Origin: Dimorphilus gyrociliatus
Lineage: Eukaryota > Animalia > Annelida
Direction: 5' to 3'
DNA length: 64,000 nt
Assembly (NCBI GenBank): GCA_904063045.1
Contig: CAJFCJ010000019.1
Location: 1,311,650-1,375,649 of the forward strand
Shown: in pieces, positions 5,064 through 59,967 of the stretch
How positions within the stretch are numbered: the first letter of the stretch is position 1
Layout of the letters: the number at the start of each line of letters is the position of its first letter
Notes under the pieces: generated by a model
The model's database searches: none
The model's input: only the letters and a program-made list of their open reading frames with translations
Told to the model about the DNA's origin: nothing
Program-made: the position numbers and the translations under genes

Positions 5064-5759
5064 GACAAAAACGTATGTATTGGCTTGATTGACATAAACA
5101 TTTATATGTATAAGTGTGTTTTAATATATATTTTATATATATATTTTACATAAATATTGATTATTACAATTAACCGCCTTATTAGAAGCTGTCACATATT
5201 GCTCTGGTGCGAAAATTTTATATTTTCCCGAATCGGCCTATTTTCAGGTCATTTTTCAGTCATGACTCCCAGTCACGCTGCTTTAGATCGTGAACATTTG
5301 TGTTCCTTTTCAGTTTTAACATACAGCGGAATTACACACGACGGATAGGCAGGATTGGTCGAAGAATATGTTATATAAATAGCACGTGATAGCTTATAAG
5401 CAGATTAGGTATAGCGTAATCGTTTCTTCTTTCTTTTGCTTGATATTAGAGGAAATTATATTCAGAAATACTTGATATTTAAACTCGAATATTTTCTCCA
5501 ACAAAGCAGTTACTTTACCAAGTTAGGAAAACAGATATTTAGGTCGACCAACGGATAAGCGAAACCGTTGGATGCCTTGAAAACTAATGCTAAATTTTCA
5601 CATGATCAGCCATCAGTATTTAGACTCAAAATAGGTCATTAATTAAAATACTTATAGAAAAAACAGTAATCAAACAAACGCGGCGAGAAAACGGAAAACT
5701 AAACGTTAACTTACCGATTCTTGTCGAAGATTGTTCGATCCGCATGTGAATTGTGTGTG

Positions 5760-5865
5760 CGAGACGTCATAAGGTGAGCAACCAATCACCATCGACTGAC
5801 TCATAGCTGTAAAAAAACTAGGGAATTCCTACGGATGTGACGTATGGGCAGAACTTCCGCCGGGA
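5760..5865. promoter_or_regulatory. Probable bidirectional promoter SAMD4/RABL6 with CRE-like, CCAAT and ETS motifs
   Basis: GACGTCA 5763-5769, CCAAT 5782-5786 and ACTTCCG 5853-5859 lie between divergent genes. Confidence 0.5.
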
Positions 5866-5883
5866 GTTTCTTCCCTAATCGAG

Positions 5884-7679
5884 ATGTCAACGTTCTTTAA
5901 ACGAATTTTAGGTGATGGAAACAATTCAAAAGTTAACGATGCGTCAAAGACAAACGCCCCAACACCTATGGTTGCCAGCTTACAAAGAAAATTCGCTAAA
6001 GGTGTCCAATACAACAGTAAGTCGATAAAATTGAGCAGCTGTAGGAAAATAACTTTTCAATTTCAATAATAATTCCAGTGAAAATCGTTATCAAAGGTGA
6101 CCGAAATGTAGGCAAAACTGCTCTTTTCGAAAGGTTACAGGGGAAAAAATTCCGAGAAGAATACATTCCCACAGACGAAATACAAGTCACGTGTATTCAA
6201 TGGAACTACAAGGCAACAGATGATGTTGTCAAAGTGGAAGTTTGGGATGTCGTTGATAAAGGCAAACCAAAAAAGAAGACAGACTCCTTAAAATTAAGTA
6301 ATAATTCAATAGACGAACTAGAAGAACCATGCTTGGATGCAGATTTTATTGATGTATTTAAAGGCAGTCACGGAGTTATACTTATGCTCGACGTAACAAA
6401 GTCGTGGACTTTTGGTTATGTTGAAAGAGAAATTGTAAAAATACCAGATCGTATACCCATATTAGTTTTAGCAAATCACCGAGATATGGGACATCATCGA
6501 ACTGTTAGTCAGGATTCTATTAAGACTTTCTTAGAAGATTTTGAACGATCTAGACCTGAGGGTAGCGCTCAAATTCGGTATGCTGAAGCTTCGATGAAGA
6601 ACGGCTTCGGATTAAAATACTTACATAAATTTTTCAACCTACCATTTCTACAATTGCAGAAAGAGTCGTTGTTGACACAGCTTGAAACCAATAGGCGAGA
6701 GTTTGACGCAACAGTTCATGAGTTAAATGCTTATGGCGAATCAGAGTTACAAAATTATGATCTTTTCATTGAGCAGTGTCAAGGAACTGGTAAAAAACCG
6801 AAAGAATGTGTTCCAGACACAAGCATAAAAATGGCACCTCCTGCTAAACCCATACCTGGTATGCAATTAAATATTTCGTCTTCCGCTCCATCCCCTCCTA
6901 CTTTGTCGATAACGCCAGCAACAACACCTATTCAATCCCCGCCCTCCACTTCAACAAATTTTGTTTCGAAATTATTTAAGAAGATTCAAAAGGAAGAAAT
7001 CGAAACCCCCCCCAAAGAGAGTATAAAAGAAGCTGAAGCCAGTACAAGTAGTCAAAGCCCTGAAGAAAGTGTAAAAAATATAGAAGAGTTTGTGCCTGAG
7101 GAAGGCATTGATGCTAATTTCTTGGCAGATACTAATGAAAAATCAGCCAAAATTGATTCAGGTAAAGATGAAGAGTCAGACGATGCTGATGAAAAAGCAA
7201 ACCCTTTGGTAGCTGGATTTCAAGAAGATATAGACTCCGAAGAAGATTCTGTGCCTTCTAGAGTATCAAAAGTACAAGATATTCAATTAAGTTCCGACGA
7301 AGATGACCTTAATAAGTTAAAAGTAGAAGAGGACATTAATGATAGTAGCGTTAACGTTGAGGAAGTCTCGTCCGAATCGAAAGGTATCGAATTGACTGAA
7401 GCTGACGTGGATTTTCTAGATAAACAATTTTTGTGCGAAACCCCATCGAACGAACCATCAACAACAGTAAGAACAACTCCTTCACCTCAAGAACAAAGTA
7501 AGAAGAAAAAAAAAGATAAAAAAGATAAGAAAAAGAGGAAGAGTAAGAAATCTAATAAAGATAACGGGGCCAAAGAAAGTGACGAGTCAAAAAAACAAAA
7601 AAATAAGGAATTAGATGATTATGAAAAATTTTTGGCTGATGGAGAAGGTGGAGAAAGCAACGGATACGAGTGTCTGTAA
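5884..7679 (+). CDS. RABL6: Rab-like protein 6 (RBEL1/PARF); exons 5884-6016, 6079-7679
   Basis: The splice gives [26 protein letters not shown], followed by DDVVKVEVWDVVDKG and LKYLHKFFNLPFLQLQ, with an acidic and lysine-rich C-terminus ending YECL. Confidence 0.95.
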
Positions 7680-50727: not shown

Positions 50728-53700
50728 ATGAAGTTAGTTTATAAAATTATCTACTGGTTTATTGATGATACACAATTTAATTAAGTGAACAAAAATATAC
50801 CCATTTCTCTTATGATTTCGTACTAGTCTTAATTTTCGTACTGTAGAATAAACGTTGATGGCCTGTTGGTTTACTTTCCTTACGAATATATTTATCCCGA
50901 GCAGTATGCTTATATGCTTGAACTCAAGAGGTCCCTGGATGCTCAGGTAATTCACTTTAATTGAAAGACGTAATGATACAAAATTGATCTTGAAAACTTT
51001 TAGGGCCACTGTGCACTCGAGATGCCTTCTGGAACAGGAAAGACAGTCACGCTATTATCTTTAATTGTGGCGTATATGAAAGTACTAACACATTTATTTT
51101 GTCACTAATTTAAATTAAAATCATATCTTTTAATAGCAACACCCAGGTGTCATCACTAAATTGATATATTGCTCTCGTACTGTTCCTGAAATAGAAAAAG
51201 TAGTGGGAGAATTAAAACGTCTCGTTGCATATATTGAAGAAGAAACTAAACAATGTGCTAATATTCTTGGACTCTGCCTGAGCTCTCGTAAAAACATGTG
51301 CATCAATGAAAGCGTATGATGATTAATCAAGATTAATCTATATAAATAAATTATGAAATTCCATGTAATGTTGTTACTTTAGGTACTAAAAGCTGTCGAA
51401 GGAAAAGCAATTGATGGAAAATGTCACGCATTAACTGCATCATTTGTCCGTGAAAAGCATAAATCAGATGCGTCAGTTCCAGTCTGTGATTTATTTGAGG
51501 TAATTTATTTAGAAAAAATAAAATGTGCTAATTAACGCCTATTTTTAGATGTTCGATAAAATGGGAAGAGAAACGATTATGCCTCCTGGTGTATATGATT
51601 TAGTATGTATAATTAAACATAAAAGGATCAGGCTCAGCTAAGAAAGAAAAATTTTTCAGAATGAGTTAAAAGATTATGGAAGAAAGAATGGGATGTGTCC
51701 ATATTTTCTAGCAAGATGCGCCGTAGGTAGTTTTTTTTCATTCTGGGTTTTATCTTCATGTTTTAACTTTACACTTACAGATAGGTCATGCCAATGTGAT
51801 CGTTTACAGTTATTACTACTTATTAGACCCTAAAATTGCTGATTTAGTATCCAAAGAACTAACAAAACAAGCTGTTGTTGTCTTTGATGAAGCTCACAAT
51901 ATAGGTAAACACGTCGTAGTACACTATTACTCTACTTTATATTATATTACTCTTTTTGACCTTAGATAACGTTTGTATTGAATCGATGAGTATTACTATG
52001 ACAAAAAGTGTATTGGATAAATGTCAAAATAACATTAAAACGTTACAAGATCAATTAGAAAAGTTTGTTTTGCTTTTTCATTCTTATAACTCTTTAAACT
52101 ATCGGATTTTAGAGCAAAGGATAGAGACACTAATAAATTAAAAAGTGAATACAAACGCCTAGTGGAAGGATTGAAAGATTCCAAAGTAGCACGAGAAACC
52201 GACCTTGTACTGGCTAATCCAGGTGAGAATAGTTATTTAAAAACCAAATTATTAATATATATTCTTTATTTTTTTCAGTTTTACCAGATGTTATCCTGCA
52301 AGAAGCTATACCTGGGAATATTAGAAATGCCCAACACTTTTTAGTATTCCTTAAAAGATTCGTCGAGTACCTAAAAACGAGATTACGCGTTCAACATGTT
52401 GTAGAAGAGAGTCCAGCTAGTTTTCTACGAGACTGCCATCAGAAAGTTTGTATAGAAAGAAAACCATTGAGGTAAGGTGATACTCCTTTCAGTTGTCTTT
52501 TGTAATAATTTGCTTGTTTTTGTAGGTTTTGCAGCGAACGACTACGGTCACTGCTTAGCACATTAGAATTAACTGATCTGCAAGACTTCTCTAGTTGTGG
52601 CCTGATTGCCAATTTTGCAACAATGATTTCTTCATATACGAAAGGTAAAGTTAATAATAGTTTGTAATTCTAATTTCGTTTTTTTATGATGACAAGTCTC
52701 CTGCGCAAATCTGATTATTGCCGGCCTTAGCTCGGTAGCTTGATCAAAATGGAATGTGTTCTAAAGAACACGCTCTGATAATATTTAATCAATATTTATG
52801 TAACAATAATTTCTTTAAATTCTCTAACAACTCTTTTATTCCTTTTTTAAGGATTCACTCTTCTAATTGAACCATTTGACGACCGAACTCCAACCATATT
52901 CAATCCAATTATGCACTTCAGTTGTTTAGATGCTTCTATCGCGATTAAACCTGTTTTTAACAGATTTCAATCTGTTGTTATAACATCAGGAGCAAGTTTT
53001 TCACTTTTCACCTATGATTCTTTCATTATTTTTATTTTTTATAGACCTTGTCTCCACTTGAAATATACCCAAAAATACTGGACTTTCGTCCTGTAACTAT
53101 GGCATCTTTTACTATGACACTAGCAAGAGAATGTGTTTGCCCTCTAGTTATAAGTCGGGGTTCAGACCAAGTCACCGTAACAACCAAATTCGAAAATCGA
53201 GAAGACCAAGGTATTATCATGATTTAGCCCTAAATATTAGCAATAATTGCTACTATCAATAGCTGTTATTCGAAATTACGGAAATATTTTGGCTGAAATG
53301 AGTGCCATAGTACCTGATGGAATAGTTGCCTTCTTCCCAAGTTATGGCTATATGGTAAAACAATAGTTTATTGACCATCAACATATAATAACTACAATAA
53401 ATCTTTTAGGAACAAATTGTTTCGTCGTGGCACGATCAGGGAATTATAGATCAAATTCAAAGATTCAAACTTGTTTTCATAGAATCTCAGGATGCAGCCG
53501 AAACAACGATGGCCCTTGCTAATTATCAAAAAGCCTGTGAGAATGGACGTGGAGCAGTGCTTCTGTCAGTTGCAAGGGGAAAAGTTTCAGAGGGTATAGA
53601 TTTTGATCACCATCTTGGAAGAGCTGTTATTATGTTTGGAGTCCCATACGTGTATACTCAAAGTCGAAAATTAAGAGCAAGGCTGGGATATCTTAGAGAT

Positions 53701-54183
53701 CAATTTCATATTAGGGAGAATGATTTTCTAACGTTTGATGCAATGCGGCACGCTGCTCAGTGCGTTGGTCGTGCCCTCCGTGGTAAAACAGATTACGGCA
53801 TAATGCTTCTTGCAGATAAGGTAGAAAACGTAGTTTGAGAAGTAAACATTACCTAATCAAATGCTGTTGCGCTAACAGAGATTTGGGAGAGCTGATAAGA
53901 AAAAAAAGTTACCGAGATGGATTCAAGAGCACTTGAAGGAGTCAATGTGTAACCTATCAACTGACGAGGCTATTCAAGTATCTAAAAGATTTCTTCGATC
54001 AATGGCGCAACCTTTCAATAGAGTATGAAAACTTATTAAAATATAATGTTTATTTAATGTAACATAATTTTTTAGGACGATCAACTAGGATTATCCCTAT
54101 TAACCTTCGAGCAATTACAAAGTACAGATATCCTGAAAAGGATTGAGCAGAAAATTCAAGCAGTACAACCGGATGCAAATTAA
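50728..54183 (+). CDS. ERCC2: TFIIH/NER Fe-S DNA helicase XPD, multi-exon
   Basis: 5-nt first exon ATGAA, then [19 protein letters not shown]; EMPSGTGKT; four Fe-S cysteines; DEAH; [13 protein letters not shown]; [15 protein letters not shown]; ends DQLGLSLL...PDAN with TAA at 54181-54183. Confidence 0.97.
52686..52778 (+). ncRNA. Candidate intronic box C/D snoRNA/scaRNA
   Basis: Box C ATGATGA 52686-52692, D' CTGA 52711-52714, C'-like TGATCA 52741-52746, box D CTGA 52775-52778. It sits in an unusually long (207 bp) ERCC2 intron, 73 nt upstream of the 3' splice site. Confidence 0.65.
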
Positions 54184-57100
54184 TGTTTAAGTAATTTAGC
54201 TAATAACTCTTTTCTATCTGATTCGTATTTGGTAACTTTTTTAGCATATGCGCATTCTTGTTTGAGAATACTTAGAAGATTTCCAATATGTCTTGGTATA
54301 CTTTGTAATCTGTCGCAAGAAGGTACATTAAGTAAATCATGAAACAGATCTTTCCACATTTTTGAACCGTTTACATATCTAAAAAGGAAAAAAATAAAAA
54401 AATTATGTTATGTTTAATATTTAAGGGATGGATGTAATGAACCTTTTGACATTTTCATTCGGGTACCACATTCCATTTTTCTGATGGACTTCCATATACT
54501 TGCCAAAGTGTAACAGATACAATATTCCTGCCACACCAAAATAGTCTGTTTGAAATTTCCATGGTTTATTTGTTCTCATTTCAATACACATGTCCGTTGT
54601 TGTCTTTGCTGTAAACGTAGTCCCCTCTTTGAATAGATTCATGTCAATCATTCTACCCAAATCTATTAAGGCTATGCATTTAGTTTCTGATTTATACATA
54701 GCAGACGGATCATGCAAAGCTTCTGCTTGTAAACTTGGTCTAAATTAAATGAGGTAACGTAAATTACGGATGGACAGATTTGTTCATTAAACTACTCACA
54801 TATCTCTTATCAATACGTTATCCGCTTTCAAATCAGCGTGTATTAAATTGAATGAATGAAGTCGGTCGATAATAATCAAAAGATCTATTGCGATCATAAG
54901 AATCAGAATCATATTGTCGGTGCGATTATCAGTGGCGTTGACAAAATCCTAGAAAGAAAATTATTTAATAATCTAAAAAGTTAGCATTATAACATAAAAT
55001 TTTTATACTTACAACCAATGAACCATACTTGAACCTATTGCAAATAAATAAACTACCATTTTCGTAGAAAAATCCATCCTTGATTTCAATAATCGCATTT
55101 TTCTGAAAAAAGTTGTTCATATAATAATATCACTTGCCTGCAAAGTAAAAAACGCTTACTATAGATGGTAAAATAAGACAAGACTCTATTTTTTTTTGAC
55201 ATTCATTTAAAACGTAGAATTCCCAAACGTTTAATCTATCTTTTTGAACTTTGAAAACGAAATTATCATTTCCTTCTTCATCCTCGACAGCGTATACTGA
55301 AGAAAATGCCCCTTCACCTAACTTTTGTAATATTCTCCAATTTTCCCCTCCGACATTTGTTGTACTTTTTACTCGAATTAAAGGAAGCATTGCATTCATT
55401 TGATGATAATTTACATAACGTAAAAGATTTTTTTTACCATATCGTTCGATCAATCTTTCTTCAAATCTATCATCAAAAGGGTTGTTTGTTCTTAAATATA
55501 TAGAATCATTTTGAATATTCATCAAAGAGTGATTTAGTCCATCTGAAGTTATTGACAGAGAATGATAGTGCGAAGATTCATTGAGGGATACTGAAGATGC
55601 AGACGAAGCCGAGGAAGCAGAGGAATGGGTGGAGATAGTTGAAACTTCAGTACTAACTTCTTGAATGGGACTAAGATATTTAGAGTCAATTCTAGCGGTT
55701 TTGGTATTTGCTCTTTGATCTCTCGAATTATTTGATGTGTCTGAATCATTTTTCACAACAAGACCCGCATTTTCTTTGTCATCCTGAATCGCATCTGCAT
55801 AATTATTTGTTTTCAATATTTCTTTGTTAGCTGGTTTTGAAGGAGTTGGAGAATCTACGAAAATGTCAAAGTCTTTTATTTTGCTTGGTACAGCGAAATT
55901 AGGAATCTTTTCATGTTTCTCTTCTTTCGAACACTCTATATGAGAATCCATAAAAATTTCAAAATCATCTACTTTTAGGCATGGAGCCGCAAGTGAGTCA
56001 TCCATCTCGTCGGTATTACTAACAAAAGGTTTTTTTGAATATTGGTTGCTGTTGTAAAATAATTAATTTTTGTTTATCAAATAATTTTGATTGACTCTTA
56101 TTACCTATTAGTATCATTAAAGATTTCAAAATCTGGAGGTTTTTGAGTTCTTTTTTGATTGTTTGACGGAATAATATTGAGATCCGACGATACTTCATCT
56201 TAGAGAGTGAATTAAAAATTAAAATAAACTATAGACCTACTTGTTTTCCTTACCTTTTTCTATAAAGTTTGTGTCATCTAGGAAAACGCTGTAAGATTGA
56301 TTAACTGCACATGACATCAATTTTCTTGCCTGGAAAGTGTTTGGTGTTTGGACGGACCTCCTCTTCAAGTCACCATAGCTATCCTATGTAAAATAACAAA
56401 TTGAAACCAATTGGGAATAGCGAAAATATCTAATTTTACCAGCTTAAAGTTGTCCTTTTGAGGAGTTTTTGGAATCAAGCTAGACAAAGCGTCCGATCCT
56501 AAAATTCCAAGAGAATCTTGACCGGAGCTATTTCTAACAGAATTCGATAGACTAGATGATGTTTTAGAATTCTTTAAAGTAGACCCCGAAAGATCTGTTT
56601 TATCCCAATCGACACTATCAGCGGACGTAAGGGATTGTAATATATCTGATAGAAGTGTTAATTAGCCTTAGCAGTTAGAATGAGGGATACGAAATTATCG
56701 CTTTACCTTGACGTCTATCCTTTCCACTTTTTCTATAAAATTCAAGTCTCCACTCTTCAATACATCTTTCAAAGCAACCATCATATAGCAATTCATAATT
56801 AACGGAAATTTTTCTACCATCGCTTTGGAATAAACTCTTTATCCGCGATCTGTTTATCGAAATAACACATGTTTCAAAATATTTAAGTTGCATGTATTTT
56901 TTAATCAAGATATAAAAAGGACTACGGAAATTTATCTACGGTTTAATCTCTGAATAGTAGAACATTACTTGACTCGGTTTTCTTGACGTAAATAACGATA
57001 CTCTTCAAACGACATTTCCTCCATTCCGCCATACAAGACATCCCAATCAACGATTATTCCTTTTGCGTCTTCCGGCCTTTCTGGTTTAGTAACATCACTT

Positions 57101-58564
57101 GAGGCGACTTCCAATGTCTTTTTCTTTTTTTCAGTTAGGACTGGAATGTTTAACGTTGGTGGATTTGACTGAGGAGGTTTCTCAACAGTCCTGTGTAAAC
57201 AAAAAATATATTGTTTACAGAAAATTTCAAATTTCAAAGTAATTACTGTGGAATATCATCATGAAATACTTCAAAATCAACATTTCTTGGTGCATCTGTC
57301 ATCGTTAGAGACTTACATACCTTTTGCTTTACCTATATTGTTAAAACAAGCATAGTTGAACATGTATTAGAAATAGTAATGATGTGTTACTTACTCGTTG
57401 CCCTCCGATTTTTAACATTTGCTGTTCATTTTCCTTCATATCAGATCTTTTGGGCATAGAGTTCCAAGGAACAACGGGGGTTTTTTCCACCTCACCATTC
57501 TCATCAATTCTGACTGCCGCGTTAGTCTTTTTGGTTGAATTATGAACGGAATATGTTCCTGGTTCAAATAAAGGTTAAAAAAAAGCCTTAAAAAGTATTT
57601 TTTAACAAACCAGCTGCTCTATCTGTAGTACGATCGATTGTAGCGTGATGTTTCTTGCCAACAGTTTTAAGTTCACCGAAAGCTCTACGGGATTCAGTAG
57701 TGGATTCCTCATCATCATTTCCAACACTGGTCTTTCTCTCATTCAGGAATCTGAGAGTGAATGCTTTCTAATCATGACTAGATATGAAATTCATAAACTT
57801 ACTGAATAGTTTTAATTAAGTCCTCTAAGGGTTCAGCGCCCACATCAAAACCAGTTTTGCAAATTTTAATTGCTTTATCCCAGTTTCCTTGAGTTGCGAA
57901 GTATTTACACCATTCTATATAAAAATAAGCGCAATTTTTCCCGATTGCTTTTGAATTATAGAAAAGAAAAATCGATGGTACGTCGGTATTCTTCAAAGCC
58001 TGTTGGGTATAATAACAATGAAAAGAATGAATATCATTAAACACATTTGTCCTCTTACCACTCTTATGCATATTTTTATGAAACGTATGTCATTTTTGTA
58101 AGCAGAATCATCCTGAAACTTTTGAACGGCTTTAGATAGTAACCTTTCTATATTGCCATCTCCCAATGGATAGTTTTGATCGACCCATTCAATATATCTG
58201 AAACAGGTAAATAAAAGTAAAGGGAAATAGAGCGATTAGATCTTACTTAATCCAAATATGCAACGGGTCTTCATGTTCCAAACGGAGTTGTTTTTCAAAT
58301 GCCCTGTAGTTAAAACATATCTAGAATAGAAATTTGATTGATATTAACAAGAAATTGCACATACTCTCTTTGCCGTCTTAAGATAGAAGATTTTTCAGCA
58401 GTGCTAGGTGTAGACGGAACAGTTGATAAACTTCCATTTCGACTTGGAGTCGCTAGGGCACTATTCAAAGCTTCTATTCTTCTACCTTGTCTAAGGGGCT
58501 GAACATTTTCTTTACTTTCTTCCCAACAGTATTCCTCTTCTCCATTATTTTCGTCGTTACTCAT
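54180..58564 (-). CDS. BUB1: Spindle-checkpoint protein with both BubR1/Mad3 motifs and an intact Bub1-type kinase (MadBub), multi-exon
   Basis: WEESKENVQPLRQGR, TPR region, second KEN, GLEBS-like EEMSFEEYR, LSPIQE; kinase motifs GEGAFSSVY, VFKVQ, HADLKADN, IDLGR and FQTDYFG; TAA at 54182-54180. Confidence 0.92.
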
Positions 58565-58639
58565 GACAGCTTAAAATTGCTTTTTTTCTTAATCTAAAAT
58601 CGCTTTTATATATGTGACAAAGCGCGGTTCATTATTTTG

Positions 58640-58660
58640 AACCGTTACCGGAAGTAGAAC
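58640..58660. promoter_or_regulatory. ETS/GABP-type motif in the BUB1/TSNAX bidirectional promoter
   Basis: CCGGAAGT at 58648-58655 in the 307-bp gap between divergent ATGs. Confidence 0.5.
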
Positions 58661-58871
58661 CCACTTTTAGATATTTTTAATTTAAATTAAAACTTAATTT
58701 TGTGTCTATAAGCTGTTTTTAATATAAGTAAATTATGCGTAAAAAGTAATTTAAAAAATTATTTCTTAGTAAAATTCTAACAACAGATTTAAAGATTTAA
58801 GAAAACGGGTATAAACAAAGACAATTTTACTTGTTAGAAACTTTGATAAATAAATATACGAATTACAAAAT

Positions 58872-59967
58872 ATGGAAAAAGAAACCACGGAAGATAGCAC
58901 TAAAGGTTTGAAAATAACTTAAAGATATGATGAAAGGGAAATTAACATTAGAAATAGTTGTTTCCCATGAAATTGACCGATAATATATTGGCGTGATAAA
59001 TGTAAATTATAGATTCGACAAAAGATAATGATTGTTGAAGTTGTTATTTTTAAAATTGCAACTTTTCTTAATGTATATATTTTCAATATAAACTATAATT
59101 TATTAGTTAAACATAATTCTGGGGAGAGTCGACGGAGACAGAAGTATAAAAGTCATAAATACAAGGATGACGACATTCCGAAAACTCCTCTGATGATGTC
59201 TTTTACTTCCTATCGTACTGATCTGGATGCAAAGCATGATAAAAGTGAACGTTTGGTAAAACTCAGTCGAGATATAACGATTGAGAGTAAACGCGTAATA
59301 TTTTTGCTCCACCGTACAACAAAGTGAGCAATTATGCGTATGTAATGCTATTCAATTATGATGTTTAATCATATTTTTAGAGAGGACAAATCTAATTTGA
59401 TTTTAGAAGCTGACAAGAAACTTCACTCATTAGAGCAAAGTCATTGGAAAAATGTTGCTTTAGAACTGCATGGTGAGGATATATATCTTTTCTTAAGAAG
59501 CTACACTCAAGGTTTGAAAAGAATTTCATAAAACTTTAGCAATGAATGACTTTCAAAATTATTTCCTAGGTTTGCAAGAATATGTTGAAGCAGTTTCTTT
59601 TTTATATTACTTAAAGCACAAGGATTTAGTTCCACTCTCCATTGTTAAAGATAGTTTAACATTCCACAATGTAGACAGTGGTGCTGTTACCACTAAAACG
59701 ATCTCTGTCGAAGTTCCAATCATTGATTTTGCATTGGGACTAACAGACTTAGGTGGAGAATTAATGAGACTAGCTATAAATAGTATTGGAGTAGGAGATT
59801 TTACTACACCTAAGGAAATTTGTTCGTTTCTTCGAGCTTTCTACGATGGCCTTATGAACTTTCGTGCTACAAACTGGCAGATGAACAAAAAATTGCAAGT
59901 CCTCAGAAACAGTCTATCGAAAGTAGAAAATGCGTGTTACACACTAAAGGTATCTTATATTAAATGT

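Follow-up and report, generated by a model that had tools for sequence, protein, structure and literature searches.

Tail-to-tail overlap of the XPD and BUB1 coding sequences within a single stop tetramer in the compact genome of the annelid Dimorphilus gyrociliatus

Can two essential, conserved genes of an animal end in one another with no DNA between them, and, if they do, is the arrangement a by-product of genome compaction or a regulatory link between the two? This question is raised by a locus of the annelid Dimorphilus gyrociliatus at which XPD (ERCC2), a gene for a DNA-repair and transcription helicase, and BUB1, a gene for a mitotic (cell-division) checkpoint kinase, run towards each other on opposite strands. 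The locus lies in a stretch of 64,000 nucleotides (nt) of GenBank assembly GCA_904063045.1 (contig CAJFCJ010000019.1, here contig 19, positions 1,311,650 to 1,375,649), which is referred to as a whole as the window. The window is rich in A and T (about 32% G+C), its genes are densely packed, and its introns measure 50-70 nt. The analysis described in the present work confirms that the two genes, both intact and conserved, do overlap tail to tail, and the Dimorphilus lineage probably arrived at this overlap as the end point of compacting its genome.

The elements that define the overlap, in window coordinates, are the following.

50728-54183, plus strand: XPD/ERCC2 coding region, made up of many short exons, with Pfam DEAD_2 and Helicase_C_2 domains and matches to XPD in the PDB.
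53879-54022, plus strand: penultimate XPD exon, 48 codons, corresponding end to end to human XPD residues 683-730.
54076-54183, plus strand: last XPD exon including the stop TAA (coding part 54076-54180), corresponding to human XPD residues 731-760; the stop is identical in a related species.
54180-58564, minus strand: BUB1 coding region, with the Mad3/BUB1 TPR region, a KEN motif and a kinase domain, from Pfam Mad3_BUB1_I and tblastn.
54180-54378, minus strand: last BUB1 exon including the stop TAA, from its translation, the C-terminus of the BUB1 kinase in the PDB and tblastn matches reaching 54183.
54180-54183 (contig 19: 1365829-1365832), both strands: TTAA common to the two stop codons, from the sequence and its translations; identical in the related species.

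As read from the window sequence and its translations, the stop codon TAA of XPD occupies 54181-54183 on the plus strand and that of BUB1 occupies 54182-54180 on the minus strand. The plus frame from 54076 is translated as DDQLGLSLL...QPDAN and then ends in TAA, and the minus frame from 54377 is translated as YVNGSKMWKDLF...LLKH and likewise ends in TAA, base 54378 being the third base of a split AGA codon; GT-AG introns (54023-54075 and 54379-54442) border both last exons. XPD on the plus strand and BUB1 on the minus strand thus form a convergent pair of protein-coding genes in which bases 54180-54183 belong to both coding sequences (CDSs). Besides the two stop codons, the overlap takes in one base of coding sequence per gene, the third of its final sense codon (AAT on the plus strand, CAT on the minus strand); no amino-acid-coding triplet is common to the two genes and no residue is dual-coded, and the sole sequence demand of the arrangement is a pyrimidine at the end of each last sense codon. 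A preliminary description of the locus had reported a 4-nt CDS overlap with zero intergenic DNA, and its coordinates for the stops and last exons are correct; the overlap itself is borne out by the sequence, the translations and the gene ends fixed by homology. A search of Rfam at the junction returned no match.

The weight of this result depends on the identity and the ends of the two genes, for both of which homology searches were run exon by exon, not on joined spliced protein models. The XPD exons carry the Pfam domains DEAD_2 and Helicase_C_2, and an XPD exon searched against the PDB matched human XPD with an E value of 5e-56, as compared to 1e-44 for CHL1 and 7e-9 for FANCJ, so that the gene has both domains expected of an XPD orthologue and its closest similarity is to XPD, with the paralogues CHL1/DDX11 and FANCJ more distant. 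Its start, from a reading of the exons, would be the ATGAA exon at 50728-50732 joined to 50847. At the other end of the gene, the exon at 53410-53820 corresponds to human XPD residues 580-682, and the last three exons together tile human XPD 580-760 with zero gap and zero overlap, which fixes both where the exons are joined and which exon is the last. The C-terminus extends 5 residues beyond the human end.

BUB1 is covered by tblastn with four BUB1 proteins from its ATG at 58564 to 54183. The last two exons resemble the C-lobe of the human BUB1 kinase, and the penultimate exon matches human BUB1 with an E value of 1.4e-20 vs 0.039 for BUBR1; the gene combines the PF08311 region with a BUB1-like kinase, and the named top matches among the representatives are BUB1, which identifies it as BUB1 and not BUBR1/MAD3. 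When the last exon is compared with the human BUB1 chain, 24 residues are left after the aligned block in both, and the number of residues that follow the penultimate-exon match is about 69 in many full-length animal BUB1 representatives and 70 here; the BUB1 tail is of vertebrate length. The protein-library search with the BUB1 kinase exon, which was used only for the C-terminal length and for the choice of species in the synteny comparison, found no close relative, the best match being 60% identical.

The preliminary description had suggested a comparison of the junction in related species, and such a comparison could be made. When an XPD exon was used in a word search, it led to an ORF (open reading frame) of 113 amino acids (P0173) that is 99% identical and that sits on Logan contigs; the sequencing runs behind these contigs number five and fall into two accession series (SRR23372228, SRR23372229, SRR23372231, SRR31984831 and SRR31984834). 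In exact look-ups of window ORFs and word searches with three window exons, in libraries from which records of D. gyrociliatus itself appear to be absent, the matches were only to genomic ORFs of one related species, and no RNA-derived contig of either species was among them. The four contigs that were compared are 99.9-100% identical to one another and about 73-74% identical to the window DNA over XPD, BUB1 and TSNAX, with order and orientation the same, and at least two of them (L005 and L007) span the XPD/BUB1 junction. In the alignment the relative reads ...GAT GAA AAT TAA on the plus strand and ...AAA ATT TAA on the minus strand, so that its last sense codons are AAT for XPD and ATT for BUB1, the TTAA is identical, and the flanking GT-AG introns are retained. 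Amino-acid identity to the relative is 92-100% for XPD and 76-87% for BUB1, while synonymous third positions are about 53% identical across both genes, which is near saturation for the composition. With their frames intact and their proteins conserved at this divergence, both partners are functional genes and not pseudogenes. The combination of near-saturated synonymous sites with conserved proteins indicates that both genes are under purifying selection, that the overlap is old, and that an assembly collapse is very unlikely. The idea that a spacer was collapsed or deleted in the assembly, or that the terminal exons were mis-modelled, is extremely improbable on further grounds: the relative's contigs were assembled separately and come from different accession series, with the junction the same base for base at TTAA in at least two of them; both C-termini agree with their homologues in sequence and length, so that neither ORF is a run-on, as had been claimed; and the XPD exons, joined at their splice sites, follow the human residues exactly.

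Several observations on the two genes stand apart from the junction. Other XPD-like matches within the assembly are 61% identical (on AT-rich contig C275) and 38% identical. The former is a second XPD-like ORF (C275:27752-28162; locus L030 3077-4360), intronless and 61% identical to the window exon, on a contig of 33.9 kb with about 20-24% G+C, where an intronless WD40 ORF and other ORFs adjoin it and its upstream part is given as N. This ORF probably entered the assembly through contamination with DNA of another very AT-rich eukaryote, rather than being a paralogue. The XPD intron at 52644-52850 is unusually long (about 207 nt), its core (52676-52788, plus strand) holds a block conserved in the relative, and it gives weak, sub-threshold C/D-box matches in Rfam (snoU105B, 21.2 bits; SCARNA18, 21 bits). 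As regards BUB1, the PF08311 (Mad3/BUB1) region is present at one locus at least in the 78-Mb assembly, the one found being BUB1 itself (54180-58564, minus strand), and the worm may possess a single BUB1/BUBR1-type gene, given the combination of an N-terminal KEN motif with a kinase domain. BUB1 is also divergent from a translin-associated factor X-like gene (Translin family), the starts lying about 460 bp apart (58564-59028); the two may share a promoter region, and their order is kept in the relative.

Arrangements of this kind are known from other genomes. The 4-base stop overlaps of convergent prokaryotic genes are formed by CTAA, TTAA, CTAG or TTAG, and among prokaryotic overlaps a length of 4 bp is the most frequent (PMC2174442). 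The TTAA at 54180-54183 is one of these tetramers and holds both stops, so that the XPD/BUB1 junction is like the prokaryotic YTAR overlaps in having opposite-strand stops in one tetramer, and compaction is the accepted driver of such overlaps in prokaryotes (PMC2174442); it is unlike them in belonging to the nuclear genome of an animal, whose genes are spliced and use cleavage/polyadenylation in place of bacterial terminators. Because 3' ends are formed in this way and there is no spacer, the 3'-end signals of XPD and BUB1 must be located within the introns or exons of the partner. Among overlapping genes of the Metazoa, convergent pairs form the most frequent and most strongly conserved class in human, mouse and fly, while CDS/CDS overlaps are strongly under-represented (PMC2330155, PMC2335118). 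The statement in the preliminary description that such an overlap is very unusual in animals is overstated, since CDS/CDS overlaps, though under-represented, are known (PMC2330155, PMC2335118) and the present one involves stop codons only. XPD and BUB1 are like the metazoan convergent or cis-natural antisense pairs in that two protein-coding genes, one per strand, overlap 3' end to 3' end; those pairs mostly overlap between untranslated regions (UTRs), whereas XPD and BUB1 have no UTR-only zone and the whole of each 3'UTR lies over a coding exon or intron of the partner. A literature search found no paper that deals with the XPD/BUB1 pair, nor any on gene overlaps in Dimorphilus. The pair is a further case of a known class, that of convergent overlapping genes, and as such is a curiosity and not a new mechanism.

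How the two stops came to coincide can be approached from the spacing of convergent genes in this genome and from the length of the XPD tail. The D. gyrociliatus genome has been described as measuring about 78 Mb in about 350 scaffolds, with a gene density of about 209 per Mb, a median intron length of 66 bp, short intergenic regions, relatively long UTRs and otherwise conventional gene regulation (PMC7854359); the assembly comprises 77.9 Mb in 349 contigs. Three other convergent pairs in the window, all with complete terminal domains, are spaced as follows.

MGAT5 and a P-type ATPase gene: stops 171 bp apart.
A fibrinogen-like gene and a Smaug-like gene: stops 212 bp apart.
A DEAD-box helicase gene and a Gryzun/TRAPPC11-like gene: stops 390 bp apart.

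A crude long-ORF survey of 264 kb, made up of the window and twenty 10-kb samples of the same contig, yielded 23 convergent pairs, the closest credible of which are 166-460 bp apart, and these gaps are upper bounds because only long ORFs enter the survey. Since two 3'UTRs must fit into each gap of 166-460 bp, UTR overlap is probably common in the genome, and with other pairs so closely spaced XPD/BUB1 stands as the extreme of a continuum. One 39-nt overlap, between ORFs at 5248-5901 (plus strand) and 5863-6231 (minus strand) of one sample (L023, contig 19: 1180001-1190000), was excluded from the survey count: the C-terminus of the plus ORF is acidic, near 5908-5903 the minus ORF reads through a donor-like GTAAGT, no Pfam match was found, and the overlap is probably due to an ORF that continues beyond this splice donor and may simply enter an intron.

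The XPD tail contains a possible trace of the event itself. Measured from the QLG motif, it is 33 residues long, vs a modal length of 28 among 23 XPD C-terminal fragments, which places one further element on the map.

54166-54168, plus strand: CAA codon at the modal animal XPD stop position, the start of the 5-codon extension QPDAN, from tail lengths; CAA is also present in the relative.

This codon is one base change away from TAA, and a tail of five codons past the usual animal end suggests that the XPD stop probably slid into the BUB1 stop. In the scenario proposed here, the spacer between the convergent genes would have shrunk to about a dozen bases, the old XPD stop at the modal animal position would probably then have been lost, and translation would have run five codons on to the next in-frame TAA, which would thereby have become paired with the BUB1 stop within TTAA. 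The resulting overlap would be nearly cost-free. With the spacer gone, the cleavage/polyadenylation signals and the termination zone of each gene would fall inside the partner gene, the transcription units would overlap, and the messenger RNAs (mRNAs) would be complementary over up to about 300 nt, an overlap that would be tolerated, rather than favoured by selection for its effect on regulation. Williams et al. (2005, PNAS) reportedly described overlapping transcription in the highly compacted genomes of microsporidia and nucleomorphs, and the present case is like theirs in that intergenic loss pushes transcript ends into neighbouring genes. Those genomes belong to parasites and endosymbiont remnants with few introns, whereas Dimorphilus is a free-living animal with conventional regulation (PMC7854359).

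The extent of the transcript overlap depends on where the two mRNAs end, for which the following elements are relevant.

54023-54075, plus strand: last XPD intron, 53 nt, GT..AG, holding candidate BUB1 poly(A) signals.
54379-54442, minus strand: last BUB1 intron, 64 nt, GT..AG, in which the plus-strand AATAAA at 54393-54398 is a candidate XPD poly(A) signal.
54076-54378, both strands: 303 nt of perfect mRNA complementarity, predicted from the exon map and hexamers if each 3'UTR reaches the last intron of the partner.

Only the gene body of the partner lies 3' of each stop, and therefore any 3'UTR is antisense to the partner, as had been proposed from the outset, and some transcript overlap is unavoidable. 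In a hexamer scan, the first minus-strand AATAAA past the BUB1 stop was found at 54054-54049, followed by AATAAG at 54037-54032, both in the last XPD intron, and the first minus-strand AATAAA of the relative is also within its last XPD intron (L005 6525-6520). This intron is 64% identical to that of the relative, vs 39-51% for seven other alignable XPD introns, and its conserved half, the 5' half, is the one with the minus-strand AATAA[A/G]. The minus-strand AATAAA-type block is most likely the BUB1 poly(A) signal, and the predicted BUB1 3'UTR would then be about 150 nt long and would cover the whole of the last XPD exon. For XPD, the candidate AATAAA at 54393-54398 is not conserved in the relative, which has ATTAAA directly on its XPD stop (L005 6665-6670), and an AGTAAA within the last BUB1 exon is common to the window and the relative. 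These two features of the XPD side, the unconserved AATAAA and the ATTAAA on the stop of the relative, are what would be expected if the 3'UTRs were very short, with cleavage within tens of bases of the stops and an RNA overlap of about 20-60 nt that has no consequence beyond termination read-through. Such a configuration is nevertheless very unlikely, as the scan found no canonical hexamer near either stop in the window, relatively long UTRs have been reported for the genome (PMC7854359), and the conserved minus-strand BUB1 signal lies about 125-150 nt past the BUB1 stop.

If the mRNAs do overlap as predicted, the overlap might be a selected regulatory coupling, in which convergent transcription or the pairing of mRNA ends of about 300 nt links the expression of XPD and BUB1, e.g. 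in the cell cycle, through transcriptional interference, duplex-dependent stability, small interfering RNA (siRNA) production or adenosine-to-inosine (A-to-I) editing. Coupling of this kind would be in keeping with the retention of gene order and exact overlap in a species at near-saturated synonymous divergence, with the better conservation of the last XPD intron than of the seven other alignable XPD introns, and with the enrichment of the convergent type among conserved metazoan overlaps (PMC2330155). Short-spacer convergent genes of yeast, which are like XPD/BUB1 in their short or absent spacers and complementary mRNA 3' ends, form mRNA duplexes in vivo (PMC6993858); the duplexes and their effects were measured there, unlike the XPD/BUB1 complementarity, which is read from DNA alone. 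The assembly encodes adenosine-deaminase (ADAR-like) and Dicer loci, which also accords with coupling and from which editing or siRNAs over 54076-54378 follow as predictions, not findings.

The evidence that could separate coupling from tolerated compaction tends to go against coupling. The conservation of the last XPD intron is accounted for by an ordinary poly(A) signal. The mild rise of synonymous identity in the two last exons, which would favour coupling, vanishes at four-fold sites (8/22 in the last exons vs 227/522 elsewhere, i.e. not raised), and three other BUB1 exons score above the last exons for synonymous identity; extra synonymous constraint on the overlapped exons, for which consistent counting gives p = 0.015, was therefore rejected as a robust effect. 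In neither the annelid Owenia fusiformis nor the oyster Saccostrea echinata do the 10 kb 3' of BUB1 contain an XPD sequence; in Owenia, where the BUB1 model is without its last exon, these 10 kb are counted from an incomplete gene end. The human XPD and BUB1 genes are on different chromosomes. The co-regulation of the two genes that the preliminary description had considered conceivable, through the role of XPD in the MMXD complex, is thus unsupported, given the synteny result and the lack of robust synonymous constraint, as is functional coupling of XPD and BUB1 in general. A selected regulatory coupling is accordingly judged unlikely. It is more doubtful still that the overlap was selected because the complementarity of about 300 nt at 54076-54378 lets XPD and BUB1 tune each other through polymerase interference or double-stranded RNA; if this were true, two essential animal genes would be joined by a conserved antisense switch, with zero non-coding spacer between them.

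The Owenia comparison also yielded an observation on the public annotation of that species. The annotated BUB1 protein (P0011, 1270 amino acids; GCA_903813345.2) ends 8 residues after the penultimate-exon match and is without the conserved last exon, with its W..F..LLN.P.C motif, so that the public model probably stops short of the true 3' end of the gene.

Set against the interpretation as tolerated compaction are a number of points. The support for a stop-shift origin comes from the comparison of tail lengths, a single line of evidence, and the predicted 3' ends of XPD and BUB1 are placed by the exon map and hexamers. The Owenia synteny comparison, starting as it does from an incomplete BUB1 gene end, is of limited reach. 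Synonymous identity is 58/87 in the two last exons vs 787/1480 elsewhere (Fisher p = 0.015), and the persistence of the exact overlap in spite of near-saturated synonymous divergence could reflect selection for the arrangement.

An overlap tolerated as the outcome of compaction remains the interpretation favoured here, and its significance lies in showing how far the loss of intergenic DNA can go in a free-living animal: two essential genes are left with zero spacer, with a shared stop tetramer of the bacterial style, and with 3'-end signals that have apparently moved into the last introns of the partners. The locus thus offers a natural test case for cleavage/polyadenylation and termination inside a partner gene, for the weight that convergent collision or mRNA pairing carries in vivo, and for the drift of stop codons once spacers vanish.

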